DNA of 64,000 nucleotides, taken from the IMG/VR virus record IMGVR_UViG_3300026521_000471, positions 62,001-126,000 of that record; one strand, 5' to 3'. Below are positions 5,399-62,228 of the stretch, one piece after another. The notes under the pieces were generated by a model. That model saw only the letters and a list, made by a program, of their open reading frames with translations. It was not told the origin of the DNA and ran no database searches. Numbering within the stretch: position 1 is the first letter of the stretch; each line of letters starts with the position of its first letter. Position numbers and translations under genes: made by a program.

Positions 5399-5727
5399 TG
5401 TTAAGGGAACAAATATTAAAAGATTTTCCTAGTTGGTCTCCAGAAAAACAACTAGCAGAATTCCAAGGTTATAAATCATTAGGTTCTTTTTCACCTTTCA
5501 CAGAAGATGACTATCTAGTTATGGAAGCAGTAATGAATAATCAAAATGTTGCTATTGAATGTGAGAATGGAGTATGTTCTATTAAAGATATAGAAAATGA
5601 AGTAGAAGAATTTGTAGAAATTAACTATAAAGAATTATTAGAATCGATTTTAAAAGAAATTGAAAATAGCAATGATACAAATTTAATAGAAAATATTGAA
5701 AAAATTATAAATGAAAGGTTACATTAA
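5398..5727 (+). CDS. Hypothetical acidic protein
   Basis: ORF track; TAATG coupling to the upstream gene. Confidence 0.65.
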   Translation: MLREQILKDFPSWSPEKQLAEFQGYKSLGSFSPFTEDDYLVMEAVMNNQNVAIECENGVCSIKDIENEVEEFVEINYKELLESILKEIENSNDTNLIENIEKIINERLH

Positions 5728-5745
5728 GTTTTTATTTTGTATAAT
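5724..5745 (+). promoter_or_regulatory. Host-sigma70-type promoter TTAAG-N11-TATAAT (representative copy)
   Basis: Same spacing at about 3781, 6565, 6837, 8058, 15844, 18581, 18944, 34234, 45511, 51358, 54822. Confidence 0.7.
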
Positions 5746-5779
5746 TAAAATGTTAAAAGGTAGTTTTTAATTTAACAAT

Positions 5780-5851
5780 TAACTTGTAGCTATAATGGTA
5801 GAGCGGAGTGTGAAGTTCCTCGCGATATTGGTTCGATTCCAATCAAGTTAA
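5780..5851 (+). pseudogene. Degenerate tRNA-like cloverleaf (anticodon ambiguous, GUG or UGA)
   Basis: Acceptor TAACTTG/CAAGTTA, D arm GCTA..GGTA-GAGC, T arm ATTGG-TTCGATT-CCAAT; irregular anticodon arm, no CCA. Confidence 0.5.
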
Positions 5852-6210
5852 TGGATGATCTCAGGCTATTAATTTATTTTAATAGGAATCGCAAAGAATC
5901 ATCAAATAATTGTTAAATTTAATCTATATATAATAGACAGTAGTTGCAGGAATTGAATTCTCCTAAGACGACTCAATGTGCTAATAATGAAAGGTTAGCA
6001 GTCGCTATATTCTCTGTAAGTGAGATAAGTATGGAAATAAGTTGGTAAAACCAAATGACACCATAAACATTTAAGAAATGTAGTTTGATAATTAGTATGA
6101 AATAACAACCTACGGTTATCAGAGGGTCATCCGACAGATAATTAAGTTTATCTGACCCGTACCTTGGAATAGGTCTAGCGATATTATATATATTTTATAA
6201 ACTATCTTTA

Positions 6211-6375
6211 AATAATTTTACCGAAGCCTCTCGTTAGGTTGGGGTTCGATTCCCTACGAAAAAGTAGCTCTTTTTCATAACTTGGAGGAACCTAAGTGAT
6301 GCCCGAAGTTGAGGTTCGATTCCTCTGTAAGGGTAGCTCCCTTTGTAATACATGGTGGGCTTCGGTAAAATTATT
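6211..6375 (+). ncRNA. Structured RNA: 18-bp terminal stem enclosing two T-loop + GUAGCUC-hairpin units
   Basis: Perfect IR 6211-6228/6358-6375; two units GG-TTCGATT-CC ... stem-GTAGCTC-stem with compensatory stems. Confidence 0.6.
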
Positions 6376-6419
6376 ACAAACAAAAATAAATAAGTATATC
6401 TTATGATCGAGGTGTACTT

Positions 6420-6557
6420 ATGAAACTAGTAATAATTTTTTTACTCCTTTTGCTTTTTACAGGATGTAAAGAACCTACAAAAGAGGAAAAAGCTAAAAAA
6501 CAAGAACAAGCTAAGTTATTATTAATTCTAGATTCAATAGAAAATCAAAAAAATTAA
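6420..6557 (+). CDS. Small lipoprotein (45 aa)
   Basis: Not in ORF track; GAGG RBS; MKLVIIFLLLLLFTG-C lipobox. Confidence 0.65.
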   Translation: MKLVIIFLLLLLFTGCKEPTKEEKAKKQEQAKLLLILDSIENQKN

Positions 6558-6671
6558 TATAATTTTAAGGTTACTTTTTGTATAATATCAATATAAGTTT
6601 TAGTTTCAACTATTTTAAATAGTAGTTAGAAGATTTAGGTTTAAGAAATTAGACCTTCTACTAAGACTTAT

Positions 6672-6818
6672 AAATTAACTTTTTAGTGTTACCAAATAAA
6701 AAAGATATAGCAGCTTAACTGCCTCTACTTTATAAATGTTAGAACACTCCTTTATTTTTTAGAACTCCTTTGTTGGGTTATTTGAGTTACTAATTTGGTA
6801 GCACTAAAAAGTTAATTT
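6672..6818 (+). ncRNA. Long hairpin RNA with two anti-Shine-Dalgarno CUCCUU motifs in the enclosed region
   Basis: 26-bp IR 6672-6697/6793-6818 with one G.U; CTCCTT at 6747 and 6765. Confidence 0.5.
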
Positions 6819-6865
6819 TAAAAAATTAAGTTTATTTTAAGAACTTTTTTTGTATAATTACTTTA

Positions 6866-7790
6866 TCGAAACTGATACCACTAAGAAATCTTTGGATTTT
6901 TTAATGGTGCTAGTCACCCATAGTATGATATGGATAACGGGGATAGTATCCCCCGAAGACGGATTTGACAATTCCGTGCTACTTAATTGTAGTCAATTCA
7001 TACAAGCTGACACTTAGGTAGGTTTGTTGCCTATCGGATACTGAAATGTGTCCTATTAGTGAAGTATTGGAATCTGCAGACTAACAATCTGCGTATGTGA
7101 GAGCCATTCGGTGTAGCATACAGAAGCTAGGGATAGTGAAAGGTTCATCCAACAATACGAATTAAGAATAGTGAACAGTAGAATAGGTGTTTGAGTGTAA
7201 AAACAAAGGCTGCTATTCAATACAATAGTATGAGTCCATAAGGCTTACTGCTAGAAGTATGGTGGAAATCGAAAGATGGAAGCAAAGGGTGTGTTGTATT
7301 CTGAAGGTCATACTTTGGAGCAACTGAGCAGACACACCCTTGTCATTATCGTATAGCTCAGGGTAGAGCGTTTTCATTTTAAGGAAAAGGTCGAAGAGTC
7401 GAATCTTCTACGGAAATATTAAAACGGAAAGTTCTGCTCCCTATGTAAAAGGTCGAAAGACCCGACGAAAATAGCCTAATCGCTGACAGTTTAACTGAAT
7501 TGGCGACAATTAGTACCTCCCAAGGGGAAAGTTGTTTGATAGGATGCAGCATTTATTGGGGTAGCTCCTCATTAACGGCCTGTAAGAAGGACGGAAGAAT
7601 GTTGATAATCGAGTAGTCACATAGTAGAGAGGAAATGCTACCTCTGTAAAAAACAAAGCGGCTATGGGAATCAACTATAATGTACTGGGGACAGTAGTTA
7701 TAGTGGATAAGGAGAGAACCTTTTATGGGGACATAATTGGATAATGCTCTGAATGGATTTCTACTAAAAGGTGTAATCTCAACCTTTTAA
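6866..7790 (+). ncRNA. GOLLD-like giant ornate RNA
   Basis: About 900 nt ORF-free, GC-enriched, hairpin-dense region after promoter 6837-6858; GTGTG..TGTATTCT..AGCAACTGAG..ACAC, CGAGTAGT and 3' GTAATCTCA hairpin resemble GOLLD as I recall it; next to tRNAs, with an embedded tRNA. Ends approximate. Confidence 0.7.
7347..7416 (+). tRNA. Degenerate tRNA-Lys(UUU)-like element embedded in the GOLLD-like RNA
   Basis: TAGCTCAGGGTAGAGC D arm, TTTTC-ATTTTAA-GGAAA anticodon arm, aberrant T loop (GTCGAAT), no CCA. Confidence 0.55.
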
Positions 7791-7937
7791 AATAAAATTT
7801 TAATGAGAAAGAATTATAGATAAAGATTACATCGTAATTTTTGAAACAATTGACAGGAACCCGTTCGATTCGTGGTTTTGGAAGCTGGTGCCACTTTAAG
7901 TCTTTATTGCTTCTATCTTTCTCATTAAAATTTTATT
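7791..7937 (+). ncRNA. Structured RNA closed by a perfect 22-bp stem, apical GTTCGATTC T-loop
   Basis: IR 7791-7812/7916-7937. Confidence 0.5.
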
Positions 7938-8057
7938 TAAATATAGTTTAATACAATTTTTATTAATTGAAAATATCTATTCAATTAAGTTTGAGGTGAA
8001 ATAGAAGATTGAGTGAAAGTCTCATATTTAAATAAAATTTAAATTTTTAAGTGTAAA

Positions 8058-8097
8058 TTAAGAAAAATTATTGTATAATTACAGTAATTAAAAAGAA
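8058..8097 (+). promoter_or_regulatory. Promoter of tRNA array 1
   Basis: TTAAG-N11-TATAAT; 8068-8097 is identical over 30 nt to 18591-18620. Confidence 0.7.
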
Positions 8098-8151
8098 AAA
8101 AATAAAAAGTGATATAAATAAAATCACAAAATAAAAATAAGGAGAACGGTT

Positions 8152-8241
8152 ATGAAAATAGTATCAATATTTAACAATTATTTAAACATATTTTATTCGG
8201 CACTAATATCGTACTCTTCTTATTTTAGAGTCTTTCACTAA
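8152..8241 (+). CDS. Leader peptide A (29 aa, MKIVSIFNNYLNIFYSALISYSSYFRVFH)
   Basis: AAGGAG RBS; Ser x5, Tyr x4, Phe x4, Ile x4 (all ATA), one TTA, matching the downstream tRNAs. Confidence 0.8.
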   Translation: MKIVSIFNNYLNIFYSALISYSSYFRVFH

Positions 8242-8330
8242 GAGATAAATTCATTTTTATCCCTTAGTGAAGAACTTAGGGATAAATTGAAAATCTTTCA
8301 AAAATCCCCTATTTTCTTTACAAATTACTT
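8236..8330 (+). promoter_or_regulatory. Attenuator-like switch A
   Basis: Box 1 CACTAAGAGATAAA (8236-8249) and arm 3 (8275-8286) both pair with arm 2 TTTATCCCTTAGTG (8256-8269); C-rich, G-poor tract follows. Confidence 0.7.
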
Positions 8331-8331
8331 T

Positions 8332-8422
8332 GGAGAGTTGGCAGAGTTGGTCGATTGCACCGGTCTTGAAAACCGGCGACGTGTAACAGCGTCCGAGAGT
8401 TCGAATCTCTCACTCTCCACCA
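8332..8422 (+). tRNA. tRNA-Ser(UGA)
   Basis: Type II cloverleaf, CCGGT-CTTGAAA-ACCGG, encoded CCA. Confidence 0.95.
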
Positions 8423-8426
8423 TTTT

Positions 8427-8511
8427 GGAAGCGTAGTCAAGTGGTCAACGACGGCAGACTGTAAATCTGCTCCCTATGGGTTCGGTGGTTCAAATCCACC
8501 CGCTTCCACCA
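8427..8511 (+). tRNA. tRNA-Tyr(GUA)
   Basis: GCAGA-CTGTAAA-TCTGC, V arm, CCA. Confidence 0.95.
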
Positions 8512-8570
8512 TAGAAAAAAATAAAAAATTAAGTTAATCTAAAGGATTAATTTGGTATAATAACTTTATA

Positions 8571-8743
8571 AATTGATTGAAATATGAAAACTTGAAAACG
8601 GATTAAACTGTGGTGGTTTATGATGTGGCGAAGTTGTAAACAAAAGAGCCCGGACCATTAGTAAAAGACTAACCATCTTTGAAAGTGGTACGGAAGCTGT
8701 TTGGATGAAGACGGGTACTAAAGTTTTCATTTTTCAGTCAATT
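8571..8743 (+). ncRNA. Structured RNA domain closed by a ~23-bp stem, abutting the permuted tRNA
   Basis: IR 8571-8593/8721-8743 with G.U on the + strand; GC-enriched multibranch interior. Confidence 0.5.
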
Positions 8744-8776
8744 GATTGAGAATTAAACTAAGAAAATACATCGAAG

Positions 8777-8869
8777 TAAAACCGCTGACATATTGTCTTG
8801 TTGGTTCGAGTCCAACCTTCCCCACCAGTTTATATGGGTGAAGTGGTGAAATTGGTAAACACGGCGGAT
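8777..8869 (+). tRNA. Circularly permuted tRNA, best reconstructed as Leu(UAA): 3' half 8777-8827, spacer, 5' half 8836-8869
   Basis: 3' half has V arm, T arm and CTTCCCC-A-CCA; the downstream 5' half GGG(T)GAAG-TG-GTG-AAATTGGTAAA-CAC-GGCGGAT complements both acceptor and anticodon stems; flanks 8744-8772 and 8867-8901 pair. Confidence 0.65.
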
Positions 8870-8920
8870 GATAAAATATTTCTTAGGATTCAATCTCAAT
8901 CAGGTCTGAAATAAAAAAGC

Positions 8921-8997
8921 GGACAATTAACTCAGTTGGTTAGAGTCACCGCCTCATAAGCGGGAGGTCGCTGGTTCGAGTCCAGCATTGTCCACCA
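8921..8997 (+). tRNA. tRNA(CAU), probably Ile2 (lysidine type, reads AUA)
   Basis: CTCATAA loop, GTCGCTGGTTCGAGTCCAGCA Ile2-like T arm, CCA; leader A uses ATA four times. Confidence 0.85.
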
Positions 8998-9673
8998 TCA
9001 ATACAAAAGTATCATTCAAAATCATTTTAATTTCACGCTCCTTTAAAACTATTAAATTATTAACAACGTCCCATTTTGCTTTATCTCTTTCTCGTTCATA
9101 TCCTTTAACTTCAATAAATATATTTAAATCGGGAATATAAAAATCTGGAAAATATAAGTGTTTTCTTCCTTTCCATTCATATTCAAATGGTTCTGTATCT
9201 CTAATATAGTTAATATCATGTTCCACTAAATATTTTGCTACTATCACTTCCCATGTTCCATGAAATTTATCTCCATTAAATTCAATTATTTTTACTCTAC
9301 CACAAACGTTATTAGCAGAATAACTATCTGGATTATTACGAACCATATCTCTCATTCGTTCTGATTGTTCAATTTTATACTTAGTACTTTTCATATATGC
9401 TTGAAAATTATCTGACATAAAGCCTTGAGGTTCCCAACCATTAATTTCCATATTATGATGTTTGGTCCAATAATGATTTCTAAATTGACCAATAGTTTTA
9501 AAATGTTTATCGCATTTATTACAAATATACTGATTATTATCTATATTAAGAAATTTATCTGACAACATATCTCTTTGATTTTTTTCACAAGCTTTTGTAC
9601 CTATATGACTTTTTAATTTAGTTAAAGAACTAAACTCTTTTCCACAATCAGAACATATTTTTGAGTCATTCAT
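8954..9673 (-). mobile_element. Free-standing homing endonuclease-like gene (C2H2 zinc fingers + PD-(D/E)XK domain)
   Basis: CSDC..H, CNKC..H..H fingers; YFPDFYIPDLNIFIEVKG nuclease motif; antisense insertion in the tRNA cluster. Confidence 0.7.
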
Positions 9674-9702
9674 TAGTCTTCCCTTTTTTGTATAATTTAA
9701 TT

Positions 9703-9768
9703 AGAAGGACAGCAACTCATACTTCCCGAGTTGTTTCTTAATTGGTGCAAACAATTAAGATTACTTCT
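9703..9768 (+). ncRNA. Conserved three-way-junction RNA antisense to an endonuclease 5' UTR (copy 1)
   Basis: AGAAG-GACAG-[stem]-TT-TCTTAA[stem]TTAAGA-TTA-CTTCT, repeated with covariation at 28593-28655; TGTATAAT just upstream. Confidence 0.6.
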
Positions 9769-10265
9769 TTATTACTCTTATTTATACTTATTTTTAATCA
9801 ATTTTAGAAACTTTCTAATATTTTCAAAGGAATTTAAGTTTATTTTAATATATATTATTGTATAATATTATAAATAAAAAGGTTATTAAAAATTATATTA
9901 GCCCACCATTAAAATAATTGATTGCTTAAAGATTTCTTTGAAATTTTTCAGCAGTTAATAGAAATATTAACTTTAGCAAATGAGCCCAAGTATCACCCGA
10001 AGCTATTAAGTAGGGATTGCCTCTCCATTGGAAGATGGCTTGGGAGCCGATTTAAACCGAAGTACAACTCTGTACAAGGACAGTTTTAAAACTGGTGGTT
10101 ATGTGCTTTATTCCTAAAAGCAATGAGTAAAAATTAAGCGTGAAAAATAAAACTCAAAAATAAGGACAGAAAGATGAATTTTACATTTAGTAAGTCCTAC
10201 TATAAATCAGTCTAATTCAATAGGGTTTGTAGTAGGACGTTAATATAATAACAGAAAACTACAAA

Positions 10266-10341
10266 CCCGTTGAAGCTAACTAAGTAGAAGCGCTGGTCTG
10301 AAAAACCAGAGGAGTTGGAGCGTTACCAACCAGCGGGACCA
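10266..10341 (+). tRNA. Non-canonical tRNA-Phe(GAA)
   Basis: Full cloverleaf and CCA, CTGGT-CTGAAAA-ACCAG; no GG in the D loop, T loop AGCGTTA. Confidence 0.75.
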
Positions 10342-10352
10342 TTTTAATTAAT

Positions 10353-10430
10353 GGGACCGTCGAATATCCGGTGACTGTTCGTTGGACTGAAAATCCAAAG
10401 GTAGAGGTTCGACTCCTCTCGGTCCCACCA
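10353..10430 (+). tRNA. tRNA-Phe(GAA)
   Basis: TTGGA-CTGAAAA-TCCAA, T loop TTCGACT, CCA. Confidence 0.9.
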
Positions 10431-10507
10431 TTTAATTTCTTCATTATTACTATAAATATAAAAATCACTCCGATAATCTATAAATAAAAATAAAAAAGAG
10501 ATTAATT

Positions 10508-10798
10508 ATGACTTTAAAAGAATTTAATTATAATGGCTTTGGAGAAGATGATCATCTTAATCCTGATGGAAGTAGAAAACCCTGGCCTCATAAAAGAAAA
10601 GTAGATCCTAATGAGGAAAAAAGAAATAATATTGAATCCGAAATAAAAAAGCTAGAAACTCAATTAACTCGATTAAATAGAAAAATATCAAATACTAAAA
10701 ATCCAAAACAAAAATTTGCTTTAACCAATGATAGACGAGCACCTCTTATAGCAAAGATCCAAAACTTAAAATCAGAATTAAAAAAAATTGTAAAATAA
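10508..10798 (+). CDS. Hypothetical basic coiled-coil late protein
   Basis: ORF track; TATAAATA at 10479. Confidence 0.65.
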   Translation: MTLKEFNYNGFGEDDHLNPDGSRKPWPHKRKVDPNEEKRNNIESEIKKLETQLTRLNRKISNTKNPKQKFALTNDRRAPLIAKIQNLKSELKKIVK

Positions 10799-13025: not shown

Positions 13026-15212
13026 ATGAAATGGAATATTAATAAAAAATTAAAAGCCATGACAATCATTCCGAGTATAATAATGATATTTGGATTTGGT
13101 TATCTGGTTTATACCGATTATAATGAATATCGAGATTTAGTTGTTTTAGAAAAAACAGTTAAAATCGATACACATATTAATCATTTAGTGCATTTCTTGC
13201 AACAAGAAAGAGGAGCTAGTGCTGGATACGTAGCATCCAATGGTAAAAAATTTAAAAATCAACTATCTGAAATTCGTAAAAAAACTGATACAAAATTCAC
13301 TATCTTAGAGAAAGCATTAAAAGGTAACAGAAATCATTTTACATTAGAAATGTCTAGAAAAATAGATGAGGCACTTCAAATGTATAACGAACTTTCCGTT
13401 ATGCGAAGTAGTATTGATAATTTAACAATAACCGTTCCAGAAACTGTTAAATACTTTAGTTCCATGAATGCAACCTTTTTAGATTTTATTAAACTAAGTA
13501 AAGATTTATCTAATGATAATGAATTTTCAAAACAACTTTCAGTAATTACAGCTATTAGTGCTACAAAAGAATTAGCAGGTAAAGAAAGAGCTGTTATGAC
13601 AAGTGTTTTTGCTAAAGATAAATTTATAGATGGTTTCTATGCACAATTTAAAACTTTAGTAGCATTACAGAAAAGTTATATGGAAAGTTTTAGATTACTT
13701 GCAACTCCAACAGCAATTAAAATTCTTAATGAAATATCTTCTACTTCTCCTTTTTTAGACGTTGAAGAAATGCGAAAGATTGCAATGGAACGAAATAAAG
13801 ATGGGGCTTTTGGTGTTGACTCGGTAAGATGGTTTGATACTATGACTAAAAAAATAAATGGTATGGAACAAATCGAACATAAATTAGAAAATATTCTTCT
13901 AGATGAAATTGATAGTCAAATGAAATATTTATTGTCGATGGTTATTACAATGTTTATCCTTGCAGTCTTAATTACATCTAGTTTAACTTATGCAGGGTAT
14001 AAATTTAATAAATTTTTAATCGATAGAGTGAACAAGATGAATATTATTTTAGAAGATTCTATTAATACTCATAGCTATGATGAACAATTATTAATTTCTA
14101 ATGATGATGAATTATCAAAGATAGAAAATGCAATTAATAAAATGTTTGTGAGTTTAACTGAAGCTGCAGAGGCTAGAAGAATTTCGGATATTGAAATAAA
14201 GAAAAAAGCTGAAGAAACTGCAAAACTATTAGCAAGAAATAATATGAATCTTAAACTGAATAAACTAATGAGTACGCATACAACCGATAACCTAAATGAT
14301 ATTAAAGATGGGCTGAGTGATGGGACTGAAGAATTAGAAAAAATTAATGAAATTAATGATAAAGCCCAAGATAATTTTAATTCTGTTATTGCGGCTAAAA
14401 ATACTATGGTTACTACTTTAGAAACCGTTTCTGAAGGAATGAATTCTACAACAGAAAGAGCGGAACAATTAGAAGAATCTGTTAATGAAATTGCAAGCAT
14501 TATTGGTTTAATCAAAGATATTTCTGAACAAACAAACTTACTTGCACTTAATGCAGCTATTGAAGCAGCAAGAGCGGGTGAGCATGGACGAGGTTTTGCC
14601 GTGGTTGCTGATGAAGTTCGTAAACTAGCTGAGAGAACAGCTGTTGCAACTAAGAATGTAGAAGCGAGTATTAATATCGTTAAACAAAATACTTCTGAAA
14701 TGAATGAAAGTACTGAACAAATGACAGAAAGTATTAAAGATGCTCAAGAGGTATCTCATACTCTAGATGTAGAATTAGACACCTTAATATCTATCAATAG
14801 AAATAATACTGTTAGAAATAATATGATTAGTGAAGATATTCTTGTTACCCTTACTAAATTAGAACATGTTATTTTTAAAATAATGGGTTATAATAGCGTT
14901 TTAGAAGAATGTACAAAATGTGAACCTGTCACTCATGAAGCTTGTAGATTTGGACAATGGTATAAAACTGAGGGAAAAAATAGATATAGTAAAAATTCAT
15001 CTTTTAGAAGTATCGAAATACCGCATAAAGAAGTCCACGAAAATGTTAGAAAAGCCGTTGAATTAATAGGCAAAAAAGATGATGATACTATTATTCGATA
15101 CTTTGAGATCGTAGAAGTAAATTCTAAAAAATTATTTGATCTTTTGACAAGAATAGTTAAAGAAGAAAATGATAAAATGGTTCTGGAGATTAATGATGGA
15201 AAAAATAAATAA
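13026..15212 (+). CDS. Methyl-accepting chemotaxis protein with NIT sensor and C-terminal CZB domain
   Basis: [17 protein letters not shown] (NIT)-TM-HAMP; [35 protein letters not shown] signalling tip; [16 protein letters not shown]. Confidence 0.9.
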
Positions 15213-17135: not shown

Positions 17136-17882
17136 ATGTCATATGATTGGTCTAAATACTCTGCATCATCCGATTCTAAAACTCTTAATAGTACAAATCA
17201 ACCAACACTTAAAGAACTTCGAGAAGCATTAATACGACCTTTAGGCGAAAGTATTAATGAAGCAATTGAAGAACATGTATCTACTGCAATGGCAAAAATC
17301 ATTACAGGTAATAATAACGCTGACTCAGCTTTAAGTAACTCTTTGAATAATCAATTAAAAGTTAATGAATCATCATTAGAAAATATATTAAAAAATAATG
17401 AAATATCATTAGAAGCACGAATTAAAAAAACCACAGAAATTATTACTGGTATATTAGTAGGAATATATGATGAAGATATAATAGAAGATACCTTAAAATC
17501 TATCGATATTAATAACTTAACATCAATTAATGATAATTGGGATGGTTTAGAAAAGGGTGCGTCATTTATGAAAAATGACATAAAAAGAAATTCTAATTTT
17601 ACCATGGATAATGGGACGGAACATAATCCAGTAGATCCATTGATTGAATTAACAAGAGCCGTAAAAAGTCTAGTTGTGCAACATACTTGGATGTCAGTAA
17701 AATCTGATAAACAGGCTAGCAATATGGGTGTTGCTGTAGATGGTGTTGTTTCTGAAGCCTTTTACAATGATGCAAAAGCCGCAAATAGAAAAGTAGCAGA
17801 AGATACAGTTCATCAGATTTTAAATTTAGATGGTACACATGATGATGACGGAATTTATCCAAATAATCAGGGATTTGAATAA
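17136..17882 (+). CDS. Hypothetical protein
   Basis: ORF track; AAGGA RBS; coupled to the PAAR gene. Confidence 0.75.
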   Translation: MSYDWSKYSASSDSKTLNSTNQPTLKELREALIRPLGESINEAIEEHVSTAMAKIITGNNNADSALSNSLNNQLKVNESSLENILKNNEISLEARIKKTTEIITGILVGIYDEDIIEDTLKSIDINNLTSINDNWDGLEKGASFMKNDIKRNSNFTMDNGTEHNPVDPLIELTRAVKSLVVQHTWMSVKSDKQASNMGVAVDGVVSEAFYNDAKAANRKVAEDTVHQILNLDGTHDDDGIYPNNQGFE

Positions 17883-18178
17883 TGGGTACTTTAGCGGGTA
17901 GAGTCCCAGATTTAAATACAGGTCACCCACCTTGTTTTACACCTACCGTAGCTATTACAGGTTCTCCAACAGTATTTGCAAATTCATTACCAGCTCATAG
18001 AATGGTTGATTTACATATCCCACATCCTTGTCCTGGAATACCACCACATCCAGTATTTCAAGCGATAGGATGTTCGAGAGTATATGTAAATTCATTAATG
18101 TGGGCTGGAGTTGGACATCCTCAATTATGTCTATCTTTATTATTAACCGGTTCACCGACAGTATTTGTATGTATTTAA
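17882..18178 (+). CDS. PAAR-repeat tail-spike tip protein (T4 gp5.4-like)
   Basis: GH..C.PT..ITGSPTVFANSLPAHRM.D...PH.C and terminal TGSPTVF repeat. Confidence 0.85.
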   Translation: MGTLAGRVPDLNTGHPPCFTPTVAITGSPTVFANSLPAHRMVDLHIPHPCPGIPPHPVFQAIGCSRVYVNSLMWAGVGHPQLCLSLLLTGSPTVFVCI

Positions 18179-18191
18179 AGGAGAGAAATAA

Positions 18192-18578
18192 ATGGACTTA
18201 ACACAAGATGAAATGACAAAATTAAAAAAATTATTAAAAAGTATAAAGTCAATCGAGTCGTCAAATAATATAGATACTATCACGTTTAATAAAACGGTAG
18301 TACTAGAATCTGAAGATAACTTTATAACAATCGCAAATGGTTTTGCAATAACTCAAGCTAAGCAAGTACACCTAAATCCTTTTGAGACTAAAAAAGATAT
18401 AACAGATTCACTTTTGACGTTAGAAAGTCTAGAGTTTAAGAAAAAAATTGTTGAATCTATTGTTTCAAAATTAAATATTATTGCGTCTATAGATGAAATA
18501 GAAGGGATTGTTTCTGGTAGAATTGATATTAATGATTTAATTGATATTGAATCGTTAAAACAATCACAGTTAAGTTAA
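18192..18578 (+). CDS. Hypothetical protein
   Basis: ORF track; AAGGAG RBS. Confidence 0.7.
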   Translation: MDLTQDEMTKLKKLLKSIKSIESSNNIDTITFNKTVVLESEDNFITIANGFAITQAKQVHLNPFETKKDITDSLLTLESLEFKKKIVESIVSKLNIIASIDEIEGIVSGRIDINDLIDIESLKQSQLS

Positions 18579-18580
18579 TT

Positions 18581-18620
18581 TTAAGAACATTTATTGTATA
18601 ATTACAGTAATTAAAAAGAA
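18581..18620 (+). promoter_or_regulatory. Promoter of tRNA array 2
   Basis: TTAAG-N11-TATAAT; 30 nt identical to the array-1 promoter. Confidence 0.7.
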
Positions 18621-18733
18621 TTTAACATTTTTTAAAAAGAATTTCAAAATTTTAGCTAATTTAAGGTTAAAAAAAGAAAACTTTTTGTATAATGTTATAA
18701 ATAAAAATAAAAATTAAATCAAGGAGAATAGTA

Positions 18734-18841
18734 ATGAAAACTATTACACTACAAAATAAAAATATTACTACTATTCATAATGCCAATAAACCGGCGGTCC
18801 TTGAAATTATTAAACAAGAACAGGATAAACAGATTCTGTAA
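18734..18841 (+). CDS. Leader peptide B (35 aa, MKTITLQNKNITTIHNANKPAVLEIIKQEQDKQIL)
   Basis: AAGGAG RBS; 33 of 34 non-Met residues are amino acids served by array-2 tRNAs; Ile only ATT, Leu only CTN. Confidence 0.8.
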   Translation: MKTITLQNKNITTIHNANKPAVLEIIKQEQDKQIL

Positions 18842-18935
18842 GAGATAATTAATCTTATCTTTTACAGAATTGGTTTTCTGTGAGAGATAAGATATTCTAA
18901 ATATCTATTCTCCCACAAAACCTTTTCAATTTTTA
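18834..18935 (+). promoter_or_regulatory. Attenuator-like switch B
   Basis: Box 1 (18834-18848) and arm 3 (18876-18893) both complement arm 2 (18852-18869); C-rich tract follows. Confidence 0.75.
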
Positions 18936-18990
18936 ATATTATTTTAAGATAATTAATTGTATAATTCACTATATCAATTAAGGATTTAAA

Positions 18991-19113
18991 ATGGTTTACT
19001 TTATAACTAGTATTCTGATTCCATCAGTAGTACTTTTAGGTTTAATGTATGTTGTGTATCATCAATATGGTGAAATGAAATACAAAAGTGAAAAACGAAA
19101 AAATAAAAATTAA
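18991..19113 (+). CDS. Small membrane protein (40 aa)
   Basis: Own promoter at about 18944, AAGGA RBS, one hydrophobic helix and a basic tail. Confidence 0.55.
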   Translation: MVYFITSILIPSVVLLGLMYVVYHQYGEMKYKSEKRKNKN

Positions 19114-19225
19114 GGAACGAGTCAATGAAAGACAAGAGCGACAAGTGTCGTAAAACAATTCAAACTCTGTTTTCTTAAATAGTCATTAAAAGTGATTGTT
19201 TAGGATGCGGAGTATAAACTATTCC

Positions 19226-19302
19226 GTATCCGTAACTCAACTGGATAGAGTATTCGGCTTTTAACCGAAAGGTTGTGAGTTCAAGTCTCACCGGATACAC
19301 CA
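19226..19302 (+). tRNA. tRNA-Lys(UUU) copy 1
   Basis: TTCGG-CTTTTAA-CCGAA, CCA; D loop carries A20. Confidence 0.9.
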
Positions 19303-19304
19303 TT

Positions 19305-19380
19305 GGGTGTATAGCTCAGTTGGTAGAGCACATCACTTTTAATGATGGGGTCTAGGGTTCAAATCCCTATGCACCCACCA
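19305..19380 (+). tRNA. tRNA-Lys(UUU) copy 2
   Basis: CATCA-CTTTTAA-TGATG, CCA. Confidence 0.93.
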
Positions 19381-19464
19381 ATGTAGCATTTTACTAAGAA
19401 GATTAGATTCTTTTTATTAAAGTGTTATTGTTAGGACGCTAACATAACTCTTAGGAGTATTTTT

Positions 19465-19539
19465 ATAGTAGTAATAACCTTTGTCGGTTTCTCCTTACTA
19501 AGGAAATGAGTTCGAGTCTCATTAAAGGCTTACTACTAT
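19465..19539 (+). ncRNA. D-armless tRNA-like element in a long closing stem
   Basis: ATAGTAGTAA/TTACTACTAT stem, CCTTT/AAAGG, anticodon-like hairpin and T arm TGAG-TTCGAGT-CTCA. Confidence 0.45.
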
Positions 19540-19599
19540 ATCAAAAAGTAATAGCGTGGAGTAATTAACCACAAAATTATATACTCCGATTTTAAATAT

Positions 19600-19675
19600 T
19601 GCGGAGTGGAGCAGTTGGTAGCTCGCTGGGCTCATAACCCGGAGGTCATTGGTTCAAGTCCAATCTCCGCCACCA
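19600..19675 (+). tRNA. Initiator tRNA-fMet(CAU)
   Basis: 1:72 mismatch (U.C), three G-C pairs closing the anticodon loop, CCA. Confidence 0.93.
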
Positions 19676-19719
19676 AATTTTAAAAATTAGATTTTTTTAA
19701 CAATGTGTATAAATAGATT

Positions 19720-20008
19720 ATATATACATTTTTAAGAGAATTAAAGATGGAAATTACATCGAATTATTGGAAATTAGGAAACAACTTTCCATTGATTTTA
19801 TCTCTTACAACCGAGAAAAAGCCATAAATTGAGTGGTGTTGTAAAACTAAGAGTTGTCTAAGTTACCTGAAAGAATGGTTATTAAATAGATGCACCCAGT
19901 AAGAAAGTGCCGGGCATCAACTAAACTTAATATTATTAATTTAATATGAATGACAAACGGGCGGAGTATGGTATAAACAGGGCAGCTCAAAATTTATAAA
20001 TGTATATG
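19720..20008 (+). ncRNA. Unidentified structured RNA between fMet and Ala tRNAs
   Basis: Late promoter 19708; terminal stem 19722-19731/19998-20007; several internal hairpins; no convincing ORF. Confidence 0.4.
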
Positions 20009-20013
20009 AAAAT

Positions 20014-20089
20014 GGGGCATTAGCTCATCTGGGAGAGCGCTACCCTTGCAAGGTAGAGGCGAACGGTTCGAGTCCGTTATGCTCCACCA
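20014..20089 (+). tRNA. tRNA-Ala(UGC)
   Basis: G3.U70, CTTGCAA loop, CCA. Confidence 0.95.
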
Positions 20090-20171
20090 TTTTTAAAAAT
20101 TTATTAAAGCTTTTAATAAAAGTTTTAACAAGTTTTTACTTGAAAATAAAAATTAAATTAAGGAAATTAGT

Positions 20172-20330
20172 ATGAGAACAATTAATACAATTACAACTAC
20201 TGTAAATACACTTATTAATAACACTATTGATACTCATGCAAATGATATTATTAATATTCATACTAATGAACAAATTCTGGATATTCAGCCGAATATTCAA
20301 GAAGATGAGCAGGAACCAATCTTTCTGTAA
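20172..20330 (+). CDS. Leader peptide C (52 aa, MRTINTITTTVNTLINNTIDTHANDIINIHTNEQILDIQPNIQEDEQEPIFL)
   Basis: AAGGA RBS; 47 of 51 non-Met codons are Ile/Thr/Asn/Asp/Gln/Glu/Leu(CTN)/His/Pro, the downstream tRNA set; no Lys, ATA or TTA. Confidence 0.85.
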   Translation: MRTINTITTTVNTLINNTIDTHANDIINIHTNEQILDIQPNIQEDEQEPIFL

Positions 20331-20430
20331 GAGATAACTTAAACTTTATCCCTTACAGAGAGATTTGTAGGGGATAAAAGAAACAAACTTTCCACTTTCT
20401 TTTCTCAATCCTTTACAAACTCTCTAAATT
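20324..20430 (+). promoter_or_regulatory. Attenuator-like switch C
   Basis: Box 1 (20324-20337) and arm 3 (20364-20377) both complement arm 2 (20345-20359); long G-free C/T-rich tract follows. Confidence 0.75.
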
Positions 20431-20435
20431 ATTAT

Positions 20436-20519
20436 TGTGATATGCGCCGAATGGTAAGGTAGCCGACTGTTAATCGGTCGAGAGAAATCTCATTGCTGGT
20501 TCGAATCCAGCTATCACAG
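20436..20519 (+). tRNA. tRNA-Asn(GUU) with an unusual long variable arm
   Basis: GCCGA-CTGTTAA-TCGGT, V hairpin GAGA-GAAA-TCTC, G73; followed by CC then the next tRNA. Confidence 0.85.
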
Positions 20520-20521
20520 CC

Positions 20522-20598
20522 CGTCCCTTAGCTCAGTTGGTTAGAGCGTTCCGCTGATAACGGAGAGGTCGGAAGTTCAAATCTTCCAGGGACGACCA
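20522..20598 (+). tRNA. tRNA-Ile(GAU)
   Basis: TTCCG-CTGATAA-CGGAG, CCA. Confidence 0.95.
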
Positions 20599-20612
20599 TA
20601 AAAATTAAATAC

Positions 20613-20689
20613 GGTCTGTTAGTTCAGTTGGTTAGAACGCAACCCTGTCAAGGTTGAGGTCACCGGTTCGAGTCCGGTACAGATCGCCA
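20613..20689 (+). tRNA. tRNA-Asp(GUC) copy 1
   Basis: CAACC-CTGTCAA-GGTTG, G73, CCA. Confidence 0.95.
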
Positions 20690-20693
20690 TTAC

Positions 20694-20767
20694 TGAGGTA
20701 TCGTCTAGTGGTAGGACATCTGGTTTTGGTCCAGAGAGCGGGGGTTCGAACCCCTCTACCTCGTCCA
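20694..20767 (+). tRNA. tRNA-Gln(UUG) copy 1
   Basis: TCTGG-TTTTGGT-CCAGA, CCA. Confidence 0.93.
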
Positions 20768-20780
20768 TTGTGTATTTTGC

Positions 20781-20851
20781 TGGGCTATCGTCTAGTGGCA
20801 GGACTCCGTCTTTTGGCGGCGGTAACATAGGTTCGAATCCTATTAGCCCAT
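20781..20851 (+). tRNA. tRNA-Gln(UUG) copy 2
   Basis: CCGTC-TTTTGGC-GGCGG; no encoded CCA. Confidence 0.9.
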
Positions 20852-20895
20852 CAAAGTACATTGTACTTTTATCAATGAAGATATAAAAATAAAAC

Positions 20896-20970
20896 GGCTC
20901 CATGGAGAAGTGGTTATCTCATCGCTCTTTCACAGCGAAATCTCGGGTTCAAATCCCGATGGAGTCACCA
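20896..20970 (+). tRNA. tRNA-Glu(UUC) copy 1
   Basis: TCGCT-CTTTCAC-AGCGA, CCA. Confidence 0.95.
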
Positions 20971-20979
20971 AATTTAATT

Positions 20980-21062
20980 GCCGAAATGGTGGAATTGGTA
21001 GACACGCTAGACTTAGGATCTAGTGCTTTTGCGTGAGAGTTCGAGTCTCTCTTTCGGCACCA
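20980..21062 (+). tRNA. tRNA-Leu(UAG)
   Basis: CTAGA-CTTAGGA-TCTAG, V arm, CCA. Confidence 0.95.
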
Positions 21063-21132
21063 TTATATCAATTTATTGATGAAGCCTTAATTTAAATATT
21101 AAAGTTTCACAAATAAATTGTTACGAGCTTTA

Positions 21133-21232
21133 GAATCGCACATAGGATACGCGGCCTATGTAGCAGAAGTACCCACTTTAAGGAGGGAGATAGATTTCAA
21201 GGGATTGAAATTGAATATCCAGAATGCGATTC
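21133..21232 (+). ncRNA. Unidentified multibranch RNA inside tRNA array 2
   Basis: Closing stem GAATCGCA/TGCGATTC with three internal hairpins. Confidence 0.45.
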
Positions 21233-21242
21233 ATTAAAAAAT

Positions 21243-21319
21243 GTCGATGTATATCAACTGGTTAGATTGCCACCCTGTCAAGGTGGAGGTTGTGGGTTCG
21301 AGTCCCATCATTGACGCCA
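21243..21319 (+). tRNA. tRNA-Asp(GUC) copy 2
   Basis: CCACC-CTGTCAA-GGTGG, G73, CCA. Confidence 0.92.
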
Positions 21320-21322
21320 AAT

Positions 21323-21397
21323 GCTTCGTTCGACTATCGGCTAGGTCATTAGGTTTTCATCCTAAAAAGAGGGGTTCGATTCCCCTACGAAGTACCA
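21323..21397 (+). tRNA. tRNA-Glu(UUC) copy 2
   Basis: TTAGG-TTTTCAT-CCTAA, CCA. Confidence 0.92.
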
Positions 21398-21410
21398 TTT
21401 TTTATTATAA

Positions 21411-21488
21411 CGGGGTGTGGGAAAGTTTGGTTAATCCGCTACTTTTGGGAAGTAGAAATCCTCAGTTCGAGTCTGAGCACCCCGACCA
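21411..21488 (+). tRNA. tRNA-Pro(UGG)
   Basis: C1-G72, TTTGGGA loop, CCA. Confidence 0.93.
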
Positions 21489-21501
21489 TTTACATATCAA
21501 T

Positions 21502-21577
21502 GCCGATTTAGCTCAGTTGGTAGAGCAACTCACTTGTAATGAGTAGGCCTGGAGTTCAAATCTTCAAATCGGCACCA
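21502..21577 (+). tRNA. tRNA-Thr(UGU)
   Basis: ACTCA-CTTGTAA-TGAGT, CCA. Confidence 0.95.
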
Positions 21578-21595
21578 CTTCTAATTGTTAAATAT

Positions 21596-21673
21596 GGTAG
21601 TAGTAGCTCAGTTGGTTAGAGCGACGGTTTGTGGCACCGTAGGTCGTGGGTTCGAATCCCATCTATTACCCCA
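21596..21673 (+). tRNA. tRNA-His(GUG)
   Basis: G-1:C73, ACGGT-TTGTGGC-ACCGT, CCA. Confidence 0.95.
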
Positions 21674-21675
21674 TT

Positions 21676-21762
21676 GTCGATATGGTGAAATTGGTAAACA
21701 CACTACCTTGAGGGGGTAGCGCCTATTAAGGTTTGAGAGTTCGAATCTCTCTATCGACACCA
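21676..21762 (+). tRNA. tRNA-Leu(GAG)
   Basis: CTACC-TTGAGGG-GGTAG, V arm, CCA. Confidence 0.95.
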
Positions 21763-21833
21763 TCTTTTAATTCTCCTTTCAATCAAATTTCATTAAATCT
21801 TAGAATAAATAAAAATAAAAAAAGAGGTTTCAA

Positions 21834-22076
21834 ATGAATCTTAAATCAATTATCGAATCATCTTATGAAGATAGAGTTTGTGAATGCAATAATATTTCCA
21901 GAGGTGAGTTATTAAAGCAATCTTCATTCAATCAAGCATTAACAGCAAAAGAAGTAATAGAATCTTTAGTGAAAAAAGGATGTGGATGCTGTTTAAAAAA
22001 TAAAGACGATTGGGAAAATTCTTCATGTAGAGAAAAAAAAGAATTAGTTATTCATTACTCAGATATAATCAGATAA
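21834..22076 (+). CDS. BFD-like [2Fe-2S]-binding protein
   Basis: VCECNNIS...GCGCC pattern. Confidence 0.65.
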   Translation: MNLKSIIESSYEDRVCECNNISRGELLKQSSFNQALTAKEVIESLVKKGCGCCLKNKDDWENSSCREKKELVIHYSDIIR

Positions 22077-22146
22077 TATATTAAAATCATTTATAAATAA
22101 TATTGATTTGTTTTACAAATTACTATTTTATAAATGGAGAAAATTT

Positions 22147-22596
22147 ATGTATAATTTTGGAAAAAGAAGTAGAAGCAGACTTGACACTTGTCACCCAGAC
22201 TTAATTAAGATTATGGAAGAAGCTATTAAAGTTTTTGACTTTTCTGTTTTGGAAGGCATTAGAACTACTGAAAAACAACAAGAATATTTTGAAACAGGTA
22301 GAAGTAAATTAGATGGCATTCATAAACTATCTAAACATCAAGACCATGGAGATGGTTTATCTCATGCAATCGATATTATGCCTTATAAAAAAGGGACAAA
22401 TGCTTTTAGTGGAAAAGAGAAAGATAAAGCAAGGTTTTATTTCTTGGCAGGATTGATTAAAGGTATTACTTATAGACTTTTAGAAGAAGGAAAAATTTCA
22501 CATACTATTAGATGGGGTGGAGATTGGGATTCCGATGATATCTTTAATGATCAAAATTTTGATGATTTACCTCACTTTGAGTTAAAAGCTATTTAA
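22147..22596 (+). CDS. Endolysin, M15 L-Ala-D-Glu peptidase family
   Basis: EGIRT..Q, SKH, HAIDI, WGGDW, DLPHFEL; start moved to ATG 22147. Confidence 0.88.
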   Translation: MYNFGKRSRSRLDTCHPDLIKIMEEAIKVFDFSVLEGIRTTEKQQEYFETGRSKLDGIHKLSKHQDHGDGLSHAIDIMPYKKGTNAFSGKEKDKARFYFLAGLIKGITYRLLEEGKISHTIRWGGDWDSDDIFNDQNFDDLPHFELKAI

Positions 22597-61834: not shown

Positions 61835-62228
61835 AATAGAAACTTCAACAAATAAATCGTCTAAATCTATGTTTATAAAAGGGATTATCCACTTTACGGA
61901 TAATGAATTAAATTTTGAAGTTCTACAAGAAGAATTCTTTTTTAATTTCTTGGAAAAGAATGGGGAATTCTTATCCCAATCCGATTTTGATATTCGCCTT
62001 GAATACGATTTAAAAGAGTTTGAGTGGGATATTAATCCTAAAGAAGATGAAGTGTACGGAGTGCTATGGGAATTTAAATTACACTCTAACAAATCTTGGA
62101 CGGATTGTGGTTATGAATATGATAGTGAGATAGAAACTATTAATTTAACTTTTGATCTTTTTGACTTAGAAGCTACTAATAGGGTTTTAAATGATGAAAG
62201 ATATTTTAGCTTTGAAGGAGATAATTGA
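61827..62228 (+). CDS. Hypothetical acidic protein
   Basis: ORF track. Confidence 0.6.
   Translation: MLKIETSTNKSSKSMFIKGIIHFTDNELNFEVLQEEFFFNFLEKNGEFLSQSDFDIRLEYDLKEFEWDINPKEDEVYGVLWEFKLHSNKSWTDCGYEYDSEIETINLTFDLFDLEATNRVLNDERYFSFEGDN

Follow-up and report, generated by a model that had tools for sequence, protein, structure and literature searches.

Ribosome-mediated transcription attenuators control amino-acid operons of enterobacteria, including trp, his, leu, thr, ilvGMEDA and pheA. In these systems a short translated leader, rich in control codons, precedes mutually exclusive helices (1:2, 2:3 and 3:4) and a hairpin with a U run located before the regulated genes; the thr and ilv leaders sense more than one amino acid. 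The pheST operon, which encodes phenylalanyl-tRNA synthetase, applies the same principle to a gene of the translation apparatus, with a Phe-rich leader that senses the cognate charged tRNA. T-box riboswitches are cis-acting leader RNAs that also choose between terminator and antiterminator according to tRNA status but bind uncharged tRNA directly and need no ORF. In the mgtA/mgtCBR, corA and tnaC leaders, translation of a short ORF selects between alternative stem-loops that expose or hide a Rho entry site, codon content (e.g. the Pro codons of mgtP) tunes the response, and the regulated genes encode transporters or catabolic functions. The PeSL (promoter-early stem-loop) cassettes of T4-type phages are repeated promoter and stem-loop modules around small ORFs in plastic genome regions, described as recombination and regulatory modules with no relation between the codons of the ORFs and the neighbouring genes.

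A locus with features of a leader-peptide attenuator was found before tRNA genes in a 64,000-nucleotide stretch (hereafter the window; positions 62,001 to 126,000 of the IMG/VR virus record IMGVR_UViG_3300026521_000471). The original prediction, made from the sequence alone, was that a 35-residue leader (leader B) surveys the entire second tRNA array of the window through a bistable RNA element. The observation on which it rests is confirmed, while the interpretation is supported only in part. Unlike in all described attenuators of this type, the genes downstream are not amino-acid biosynthesis or aminoacyl-tRNA synthetase genes but tRNA genes, together with a small ORF cassette, up to 11-12 amino-acid classes are represented in one leader, and the stems are long and AU-rich. 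By contrast with pheST, which regulates a synthetase and a single amino acid in a bacterial chromosome, the regulated product here would be the tRNA itself, such that the loop would close directly on the sensed molecule. No T-box or other Rfam cis-regulator was found at 18550-22150 or 5700-10550, either at the gathering threshold or at E <= 1. Literature searches for prior descriptions of such control of tRNA genes found none. The features of the locus and of its two paralogues in the window are as follows.

18685..18693, + strand: promoter-like extended -10 motif TTGTATAAT, about 40 nt before the leader start; a second copy lies at 18594-18602.
18721..18727, + strand: Shine-Dalgarno sequence AAGGAGA, 6 nt before the ATG.
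18734..18841, + strand: leader ORF B, 35 codons.
18827..18848, + strand: arm 1, which holds the last four codons and the TAA stop (18839-18841); its core is 18832-18848.
18852..18876, + strand: arm 2, which pairs either with arm 1 (17-22 bp) or with arm 3 (18 bp).
18876..18893, + strand: arm 3, a near-copy of arm 1, which pairs with arm 2 or, as the 5' half of the second hairpin, with arm 4.
18872..18934, + strand: the 3:4 hairpin (18872-18922) followed by the U-rich run TTTTCAATTTTT (18923-18934), a candidate terminator.
18957..19113, + strand: variable cassette of a promoter-like TTGTATAAT (18957-18965) and a 40-aa hydrophobic small ORF (18991-19113).
19126..19179, + strand: conserved 17-codon mini-ORF (4 Lys) with its own AAGGAA site, directly before the two tRNA-Lys genes.
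19226..21762, + strand: tRNA array 2, namely Lys, Lys, CAU tRNA with initiator features, Ala, [leader C], Asn, Ile, Asp, Gln, Gln, Glu, Leu(UAG), Asp, Glu, Pro, Thr, His, Leu(GAG).
20172..20418, + strand: paralogous unit C inside the array, with a 52-codon leader (20172-20330, no Lys) whose stop is in arm 1, a 1:2 helix at 20319-20364 and a 3:4 hairpin at 20365-20418.
8071..8318, + strand: paralogous unit A before tRNA-Ser/Tyr, with TTGTATAAT at 8071, a 29-codon Ser/Tyr/Phe/ATA-rich leader at 8152-8241, a 1:2 helix at 8228-8277, a 3:4 hairpin at 8279-8308 and a U run at 8309-8318.

The TTGTATAAT motif occurs 21 times in the window against 3.75 expected, 20 of them on the + strand, and at leader B it is part of a 34-nt repeat at 18570, 18661 and 18933. 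The AAGGAGA/AAGGAAA spacing is the same in all family members. ARAGORN and Rfam place 17 tRNAs at 19226-21762, which cover all but one of the amino-acid classes of the leader. The codon counts agree with the original prediction: Lys AAA x5, Ile ATT x6, Thr x4, Asn x4, Gln x4, Leu CTA/CTT/CTG, Ala x2, Glu x2, one each of His, Pro and Asp, and a single Val as the only unserved codon, with no Ser, Tyr, Phe, ATA or TTA. The further claim that array 1 serves ATA and TTA was not confirmed. Array 1 has Ser(UGA), Tyr, three Phe and one CAU tRNA (at 8921), whose identity (Met or Ile2) could not be settled from annotated relatives, and no Leu(UAA) tRNA was found.

The served classes make up 0.60 of the codons in the long ORFs of the window, so that 33 served of the 34 non-start codons gives a binomial p of 8e-7. 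None of 13,074 34-codon windows in long ORFs reaches 33 (maximum 31), and the best of 154 other small ORFs has p = 0.034. The match is specific to the reading frame, with 33/34 in frame against 15/33 and 13/33 out of frame. Of the paralogues, C has 47 of 51 codons read by the tRNAs downstream of it (p = 3e-13), and no long-ORF window or other small ORF equals B or C. A has 13/28 in Ser-TCN/Tyr/Phe/Met, or 17/28 if ATA is counted, but its composition alone is not exceptional among T-rich small ORFs, where the null reaches p = 9e-6. The partition extends to the codon level: A uses ATA for all 4 Ile codons whereas B and C use ATT/ATC for 17 of 17, and all 6 Leu codons in B and C are CTN, although TTA is 60% of Leu codons genome-wide.

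About 20 further units were found in related uncultured vent-phage contigs (designated L followed by a number), and the leaders mirror the tRNAs downstream of them and not those upstream. Codons served only by upstream tRNAs number 0-2 per leader against 8-11 expected. The trend is exemplified by Lys, the most used amino acid in this genome (9.9%): the seven C-type leaders, which lie downstream of the Lys and Ala tRNAs, have 1 Lys in 373 codons against 36.9 expected, while the B-type leaders have 31 in 219. The L044/L247 contig has a Lys/Ala/Gln/His-rich leader before Lys, Ala, His, His, Gln, Gln, a His/Gln-rich leader (13 of 39 codons) directly before His, His, Gln, Gln, and a Ser/Tyr/Phe-rich leader before Ser, Tyr, CAU, Phe, Phe. 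In L250 the B-type leader has 43/43 codons served and the C-type leader 48/51. The B-type leader of L178 has 3 Val codons and its array has tRNA-Val; however, no tRNA-Val is visible for the 5 Val codons in L232/L196, although these contigs are truncated. Orthologues of leader B in L219, L207, L232/L196, L178 and L250 are 31-44 aa long and 37-83% identical, and all end in arm 1. Across the family the leaders vary from 29 to 60 aa and fall to 37-56% identity, yet every one stays open despite indels and ends inside arm 1; one copy with a 1-nt deletion ends at the next TAA of arm 1.

Searches of GenBank phages returned no close relative of the window, only tRNA hits, and a protein search of IMG/VR with the 715-aa neighbouring gene returned only the window's own contig. 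Two scans of IMG/VR with the arm motif gave only the window's own units plus chance hits without tRNAs. Synteny through the neighbouring peptidase gene was mostly not conserved: L040-L043 and L046-L049 had no comparable units, and L095-097, L166, L172 and Enterococcus phage EFDG1 showed nothing convincing.

The leader B stop codon lies inside a three- to four-arm RNA element that folds far better than shuffled sequences (z = -6.4 and -7.4). The 1:2 helix has 17 contiguous pairs (18832-18848 with 18855-18871), extending to 22 pairs with one mismatch, and the 2:3 helix has 18 pairs (18852-18869 with 18876-18893) with two G.U pairs. As the original prediction held, B has the cleanest bistable element. 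With arm 1 masked, all seven B-type units flip in silico from 1:2 plus 3:4 to 2:3, whereas for the A and C types 3:4 stays the thermodynamic optimum. A global MAFFT alignment of all units misaligned arm 3, so structure tests were done per type. Changes in the arms keep pairing (CAC.TAAG/CTTA.GTG in type A against CTG.TAAG/CTTA.CAG in types B and C), there are 3 compensatory pairs in C-type 1:2 and 3:4, and the apical stems of 3:4 differ in sequence but are kept, including in every B-type relative. Covariation support for 2:3 is weak, as the arms are almost invariant: 12 of 15 pairs never vary and the shuffle control was not exceeded. The 3:4 hairpin of B appears in the minimum-energy folds but is long and AU-rich with internal loops, and a consensus terminator scan flagged 1:2 and not 3:4. 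A-type units have a GGGAU/AUCCC stem plus U run, and most B-type units also have hairpin-plus-U-run ends, while C-type units, L194 and the L247 A-type unit lack a U run after 3:4.

Coverage of the locus by RNA-library sequence was examined in Logan metatranscriptome contigs. These cover the 3' half of the leader plus the switch (18774-18933) and cross 18935, so that the absence of any transcript across this position, which had been set beforehand as an outcome that would refute the prediction, was not observed. One contig ends at 18933. The contigs carry no strand information and could include DNA carry-over, given that structural genes reach depth 8 in the same run.

An unbiased scan for small ORFs enriched in the classes of the downstream tRNAs ranked the leaders first in every positive locus and also found leader ORFs in unrelated, cultured phages. 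CcrColossus, Karma, CcrBL10, CcrSC and the Brevundimonas phages carry a leader ORF before the Val/Ile/Gln/Asn/Arg array. In its 14-codon control segment 10-13 codons are served, while the rest of the ORF is at background, and it is followed by an annotated rho-independent terminator, whose 3' arm is repeated inside the ORF as an antiterminator. Here the control codons sit on arm 1, exactly as in the geometry of the amino-acid operons. Karma gp083 has 38/44 codons served, before the Pro/Thr/Lys/Leu/Ala/Ser tRNAs.

Taken together, the best explanation is that leader B is a translated sensor ORF joined to a ribosome-sensitive RNA switch, i.e. a leader-peptide attenuator in front of a phage tRNA operon. 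In this view, transcription would start at a promoter with the TTGTATAAT motif, and a ribosome loaded at the strong ribosome-binding site would read 35 codons that are almost only those decoded by the downstream tRNAs. A ribosome on the last roughly 8 codons or on the stop codon would keep arm 1 single-stranded, arm 2 would then pair with arm 3, the 3:4 hairpin with its U run could not form and RNA polymerase would read on towards the tRNA genes. If no ribosome were there when arm 3 emerges, because none had loaded or one was held up earlier in the ORF, 1:2 and 3:4 would form and transcription would stop or pause. The output would therefore report how well the codons served by the array are being decoded, and units A and C would do the same for their own tRNA sets. 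The analysis itself establishes the ORF, its frame-specific codon set, the downstream-only polarity, the alternative helices and their conservation, and an independent analogue in cultured phages; translation of the ORF, termination at 3:4, the coupling between them and any dependence of read-through on translation or charged-tRNA supply are inferred. The net sign, i.e. whether slow decoding would raise or lower tRNA transcription, is not resolved by the geometry, as served codons fill the whole ORF but only the last roughly 8 can mask arm 1. This geometry, with the stop codon inside arm 1 and served codons spread over the whole ORF, differs from the trp-type layout that the original prediction implied, and the classical logic in which a stall gives read-through does not follow from it. 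Attenuation by these alternative helices is held with moderate confidence, whereas a cis-regulatory link between the leader and its downstream tRNAs, by whatever read-out, is considered likely.

A different read-out of the same sensor ORF is possible, though less likely than attenuation. The C-rich, G-poor arm 4 would be exposed only in the 2:3 state and could act as a Rho entry site, or the 17-22 bp helices, which are long enough for RNase III, could be processing sites that separate the leader from the tRNA precursor. The absence of a U run after 3:4 in several family members and the C/U-rich character of arm 4 and its 3' flank are consistent with this, and a Rho read-out would make stalls anywhere in the ORF turn the operon on, which fits the spread of served codons. 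On the other hand, A-type and most B-type units do have hairpin-plus-U-run ends, and the idea rests on sequence features alone, for an unknown host with unknown Rho and RNase III. It is unlikely that the units are instead PeSL-type mobile cassettes, spread and homogenised by recombination, with passenger ORFs. Three paralogous copies have near-identical arms and similar upstream regions, the promoter-like motif and hairpins are repeated, the region between switch B and the first tRNA differs among relatives, and relatives sharing the neighbouring peptidase gene carry T4-type genes. In addition, arms 1 and 3, and arms 2 and 4, are homologous, and a tandemly duplicated hairpin would give 2:3 complementarity automatically. 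However, the arm motif occurs only at the three tRNA-linked units in the 64 kb, and this reading gives no reason for frame-specific codon sets that follow the downstream tRNAs, for leaders of quite different sequence (His/Gln; Lys/Ala/Gln/His) obeying the same rule, for ORFs of 29-60 codons all ending in arm 1, or for the unrelated Caulobacter-phage leaders with classical terminators.

That the ORFs encode ordinary small phage proteins, which resemble the tRNA set only because phage tRNAs track phage codon usage, is very unlikely. Phage tRNA sets generally follow phage codon usage, the B set already covers 60% of codons, small ORFs are common in phage tRNA regions and the neighbouring 40-aa ORF looks like a membrane peptide. 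Yet Lys is essentially absent from the C-type leaders, no real protein window approaches these values, the peptides keep their composition but not their sequence or length, and no homologues exist beyond the family. Chance is the least probable reading of all: the ORF was chosen after inspection, A-rich sequence favours Lys, Asn, Thr, Ile and Gln codons, and an AT-rich, G-poor spacer could happen to be open in one frame, but the match is frame-specific, is replicated in about 20 orthologous or paralogous units of changing sequence, and was recovered independently by the unbiased scan. In-frame read-through of the TAA to the TGA in arm 3 of unit B, 42 nt apart, was considered and rejected because units A and C and the relatives lack it.

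Why phages carry tRNA genes, and how these are expressed, is an open question, for which current ideas include codon-usage compensation and replacement of host tRNAs degraded or cleaved by defence nucleases. It is somewhat more likely than not that phages autoregulate their tRNA supply with multi-codon leader-peptide attenuators, a previously unrecognised regulatory class in which the sensed molecules (charged tRNAs) are the products of the regulated genes. On this reading the class has arisen at least twice, in a clade of about 220-260 kb vent and marine phages with a conserved four-arm switch and in the cultured Caulobacter and Brevundimonas giant phages with classical terminators, and the nested leaders (B over the whole array, C over its distal part) would give hierarchical control of sub-arrays. 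Such a sensor would show that phages measure decoding capacity codon class by codon class and adjust tRNA output, turning the question into a testable circuit. It would also extend leader-peptide attenuation from amino-acid metabolism to stable-RNA genes, with up to a dozen amino-acid classes read by one leader. A small ORF enriched for the downstream tRNA classes is a simple computable signature for such elements, and the Caulobacter-phage analogue offers an immediate experimental system.

The promoter-like site and small ORF between switch B and the first tRNA are present, as originally described, but the suggestion that they are a later insertion bypassing the control needs to be qualified. 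They are not private to this genome and form a variable cassette, which four relatives have and four lack: it sits at the same offset in L219, L207 and L231 and is absent from L232/L196, L178 and L250, a distribution that does not distinguish gain from loss. In one run the RNA-library contig over 18948-19275 has a depth of 93.6, against 14.8 for 18774-18933, i.e. about 6 times deeper downstream of the promoter-like site than over the switch. This fits a bypass promoter, which may supply most tRNA-Lys transcripts, but does not prove one. Variants of the Lys-containing mini-ORF at 19126-19179 occur in L219, L207, L178 and L250.

The window is part of a 224-kb uncultured phage contig (IMG/VR UViG 3300026521_000471), which is found in hydrothermal-vent and epibiont metagenomes, has a GC content of 27% and carries nearly all of its genes on the + strand. 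The features of the element before the second tRNA array (unit B) are as follows.

About 40 nt before the leader start: TTGTATAAT, a promoter-like motif.
6 nt before the ATG: AAGGAGA.
18734-18841: ORF of 35 codons.
18839-18841: stop codon, inside the 5′ arm (arm 1) of the first hairpin.
18832-18848 with 18855-18871: 17-bp hairpin (arms 1 and 2; helix 1:2), which extends to 22 bp.
18876-18893: arm 3, a near-copy of arm 1, with which arm 2 can instead pair over 18 bp, including two G.U pairs (helix 2:3).
18872-18922: second, imperfect hairpin (3:4), of which arm 3 is also the 5′ half, followed by TTTTCAATTTTT.

The TTGTATAAT motif occurs 21 times in the window against 3.75 expected, with 20 of the occurrences on the + strand. 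The region folds much better than shuffled controls (z = -6.4 and -7.4). The observation made in the original prediction holds, and all of the codon counts it gave for this ORF are correct.

The codon classes read by the 17 tRNAs of 19226-21762 make up 0.60 of codons in the long ORFs of the window, such that 33 of 34 codons in the leader gives p = 8e-7. In the other two frames the same DNA gives 15/33 and 13/33. No 34-codon window of any long ORF reaches 33 (maximum 31 among 13,074 windows) and the best of 154 other small ORFs has p = 0.034.

The arm motif recurs at 20323 (+) and 20345 (-), and more weakly at 8234, which led to the identification of two paralogous units. Unit C (20172-20330, 52 codons) lies inside the array, after the Lys, Lys, CAU and Ala tRNAs and before those for Asn, Ile, Asp, Gln, Gln, Glu, Leu, Asp, Glu, Pro, Thr, His and Leu. 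Of its 51 codons, 47 are read by those downstream tRNAs (p = 3e-13), and the nine amino acids that occur at least twice in it are exactly the nine of the downstream tRNAs. It has no Lys, although Lys is the commonest amino acid of this genome (9.9%). Unit A (8152-8241, 29 codons) precedes tRNA-Ser(UGA), Tyr, a CAU tRNA and Phe, and is rich in Ser-TCN, Tyr and Phe, although on composition alone it is not exceptional among T-rich small ORFs. All four of its Ile codons are ATA, whereas B and C use ATT/ATC 17 times out of 17, and all six Leu codons of B and C are CTN, although TTA is 60% of Leu codons genome-wide. Types A and B/C differ by a compensated change in the helix, CAC.TAAG with CTTA.GTG against CTG.TAAG with CTTA.CAG.

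The CAU tRNA at 19600-19675 has initiator features (a 1-72 mismatch and three G-C pairs at the foot of the anticodon stem). The one at 8921-8997 does not and could be elongator Met or a lysidine-type Ile tRNA, which matters for the four ATA codons of leader A. A third tRNA-Phe(GAA), at 10266-10341 (+), was missed by ARAGORN at default settings but was found by Rfam and by ARAGORN at a lower threshold. Between the CAU tRNA and tRNA-Ala of the second array, a 26-codon ORF (19747-19827, +) with an upstream promoter-like site is conserved in the related contig L219; it contains a chance-like arm-2 motif but no switch.

A three-arm pattern scan of JGI metagenome contigs gave 74 loci, about 13 of which carry an in-frame small ORF that ends at the TAA of arm 1, with same-strand tRNAs 90-400 nt downstream. 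Synteny and protein searches added L044/L247, a 261-kb contig with 38% GC, and a further related contig, L250. The correspondence between leader codons and downstream tRNAs holds throughout. A-type leaders are Ser/Tyr/Phe-rich (75 of 152 codons against 24 expected) and precede Ser and Tyr tRNAs. B-type leaders precede Lys, Lys and Ala tRNAs and the rest of the array, and have 3 codons for Ser, Tyr, Phe, Gly, Arg, Cys or Trp in 219, against 55 expected. C-type leaders have 1 Lys in 373 codons, against 36.9 expected. In L250 the B-type leader has 43 of 43 codons served and the C-type leader 48 of 51. The L044/L247 contig has leaders of different sequence that obey the same rule: one is Lys/Ala/Gln/His-rich and precedes Lys, Ala, His, His, Gln, Gln, while another has 13 His or Gln codons in 39, without Lys, and lies directly before His, His, Gln, Gln. 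A release-factor-like gene (PCRF and RF-1 domains) lies inside the tRNA array of this contig (L044:5900-6602, equivalent to L247:15413-16115) and is called as two overlapping ORFs, which suggests a frameshift or a sequencing break.

Peptide identity to the window copies falls to 37-56% and lengths range from 29 to 60 aa, yet every ORF stays open and ends in arm 1; one copy with a 1-nt deletion simply ends at the next TAA of arm 1. What is conserved is composition and reading frame, not peptide sequence. In a more distant relative (L095:11355-11427), a 7-codon mini-ORF with a ribosome-binding site is followed by GGGATAAC/GTTATCCC hairpins that resemble arms 2-4, directly before tRNA-Pro, and may be a reduced form of the element.

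Arms 1-3 are almost invariant across the family. This is expected if each arm must satisfy two partners, but it leaves little covariation with which to test 2:3, as 12 of 15 pairs never vary. The changes that exist keep pairing: one-sided transitions occur in B-type 2:3, three compensatory pairs occur in C-type 1:2 and 3:4, and the apical stems of 3:4 differ in sequence but are kept. Arms 1 and 3, and arms 2 and 4, are homologous, and tandem hairpin copies would give 2:3 complementarity by themselves. With arm 1 masked, all seven B-type units flip in silico from 1:2 plus 3:4 to 2:3, while most A and C units keep 3:4 thermodynamically. B is therefore indeed the cleanest switch, as the original prediction had claimed. 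A U run follows 3:4 in A-type and most B-type units, but not in C-type units, in the related L194 or in the L247 A-type unit.

Downstream of the switch, the TTGTATAAT at 18957 and a 40-aa hydrophobic ORF lie at the same offset in the related contigs L219, L207 and L231. They are missing from L232/L196, L178 and L250, which have other sequence there. All share a Lys-rich mini-ORF just before tRNA-Lys. In the window this mini-ORF (19126-19179, +) has 17 codons, 4 of them Lys, and its own AAGGAA site, and lies directly before the two tRNA-Lys genes; it is conserved in L219, L207, L178 and L250. A hairpin at about 19203-19232 overlaps the 5′ acceptor strand of tRNA-Lys.

Three metatranscriptome runs (X6, X10 and X11) hold exact contigs over this region.

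X6: 18774-18933 at depth 14.8, and 18948-19275 at depth 93.6.
X10: 18891-19041 and 19083-19258.
X11: 18887-19037 and 19074-19378.

RNA-library molecules thus cover the switch and cross 18935, so that the original prediction is not refuted by a lack of transcripts crossing this position, although the contigs are unstranded and DNA carry-over is not excluded. One contig ends in the U run, and the region after the internal promoter-like site is about 6-fold deeper.

An unbiased scan of ATG ORFs of 12-70 codons ending within 450 nt of a tRNA, scored for enrichment of the downstream tRNA classes, ranked the known leaders first in the window, L250 and L247. It also flagged ORFs in the cultured Caulobacter phage CcrColossus, whereas Enterococcus phage EFDG1 and several other loci showed nothing comparable. 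In CcrColossus, Karma, CcrBL10, CcrSC and two Brevundimonas phages there is a conserved leader before the Val/Ile/Gln/Asn/Arg array. Its 14-codon control segment has 10-13 served codons (p about 1e-5 each), while the rest of the ORF is at background. It is followed by an annotated rho-independent terminator, the 3′ arm of which is repeated inside the ORF, which is the textbook antiterminator layout. Karma gp083 has 38 of 44 codons served before the Pro/Thr/Lys/Leu/Ala/Ser tRNAs, and is again followed by an annotated terminator. The loci in these cultured giant phages, with this classical attenuator geometry, are as follows.

L251:8172-8335 and L251:1288-1407: Caulobacter phage CcrColossus (NC_019406.1).
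L256:92-321 and L256:2493-2649: Karma.
L253, L254, L255 and L257: further sequences from this group of Caulobacter and Brevundimonas phages.

The best explanation is a leader-peptide attenuator in front of phage tRNA operons. The original prediction, that the leader surveys the entire second tRNA array through a switch controlled by its translation, is partly supported. The analysis itself shows the ORF, the frame-specific and polar correspondence between codons and tRNAs, the alternative helices, their conservation and a convergent system elsewhere, while translation of the leader, termination at 3:4 and the coupling between the two are inferred. No prior description of such elements was found in the literature searched.

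Two readings of the direction of control follow from the geometry. As the stop codon lies in arm 1, a ribosome on the last roughly 8 codons or on the stop codon would favour 2:3 and read-through, while a ribosome held up earlier, or absent, would favour 1:2 plus 3:4. Slow decoding of the 3′-terminal codons would then raise tRNA transcription, which is the classical homeostatic logic; alternatively, the whole ORF would act as an arrival-time sensor that licenses transcription only when served codons are decoded well. A Rho or processing read-out is a serious variant of this explanation.

Other features of the window are as follows.

7284-7785 (+): strong but sub-threshold match to GOLLD RNA (RF02032; 110.7 bits against a gathering score of 150, E = 2e-29), enclosing a tRNA-like element at 7347-7416 that Rfam calls but ARAGORN does not.
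5962-6062: weak RAGATH-33 hit.
8954-9673 (-): the only sizeable minus-strand ORF, encoding a C2H2 zinc-finger plus DUF7487 protein (homing-endonuclease-like), antisense within tRNA array 1, with its 3′ end overlapping the CAU tRNA.
13026-15212 (+): phage-encoded chemoreceptor-like protein with NIT, MCP-signalling and CZB zinc-binding domains.
32364-34214 (+): full-length class II aspartyl-tRNA-synthetase-like gene (tRNA-synt_2, GAD and OB anticodon-binding domains), in the same phage that carries two tRNA-Asp genes.
17882-18178 (+): PAAR-motif protein (spike tip) just upstream of the leader region, such that the leader and tRNA block lies between a structural module and a peptidase M15-like gene (22108-22596).
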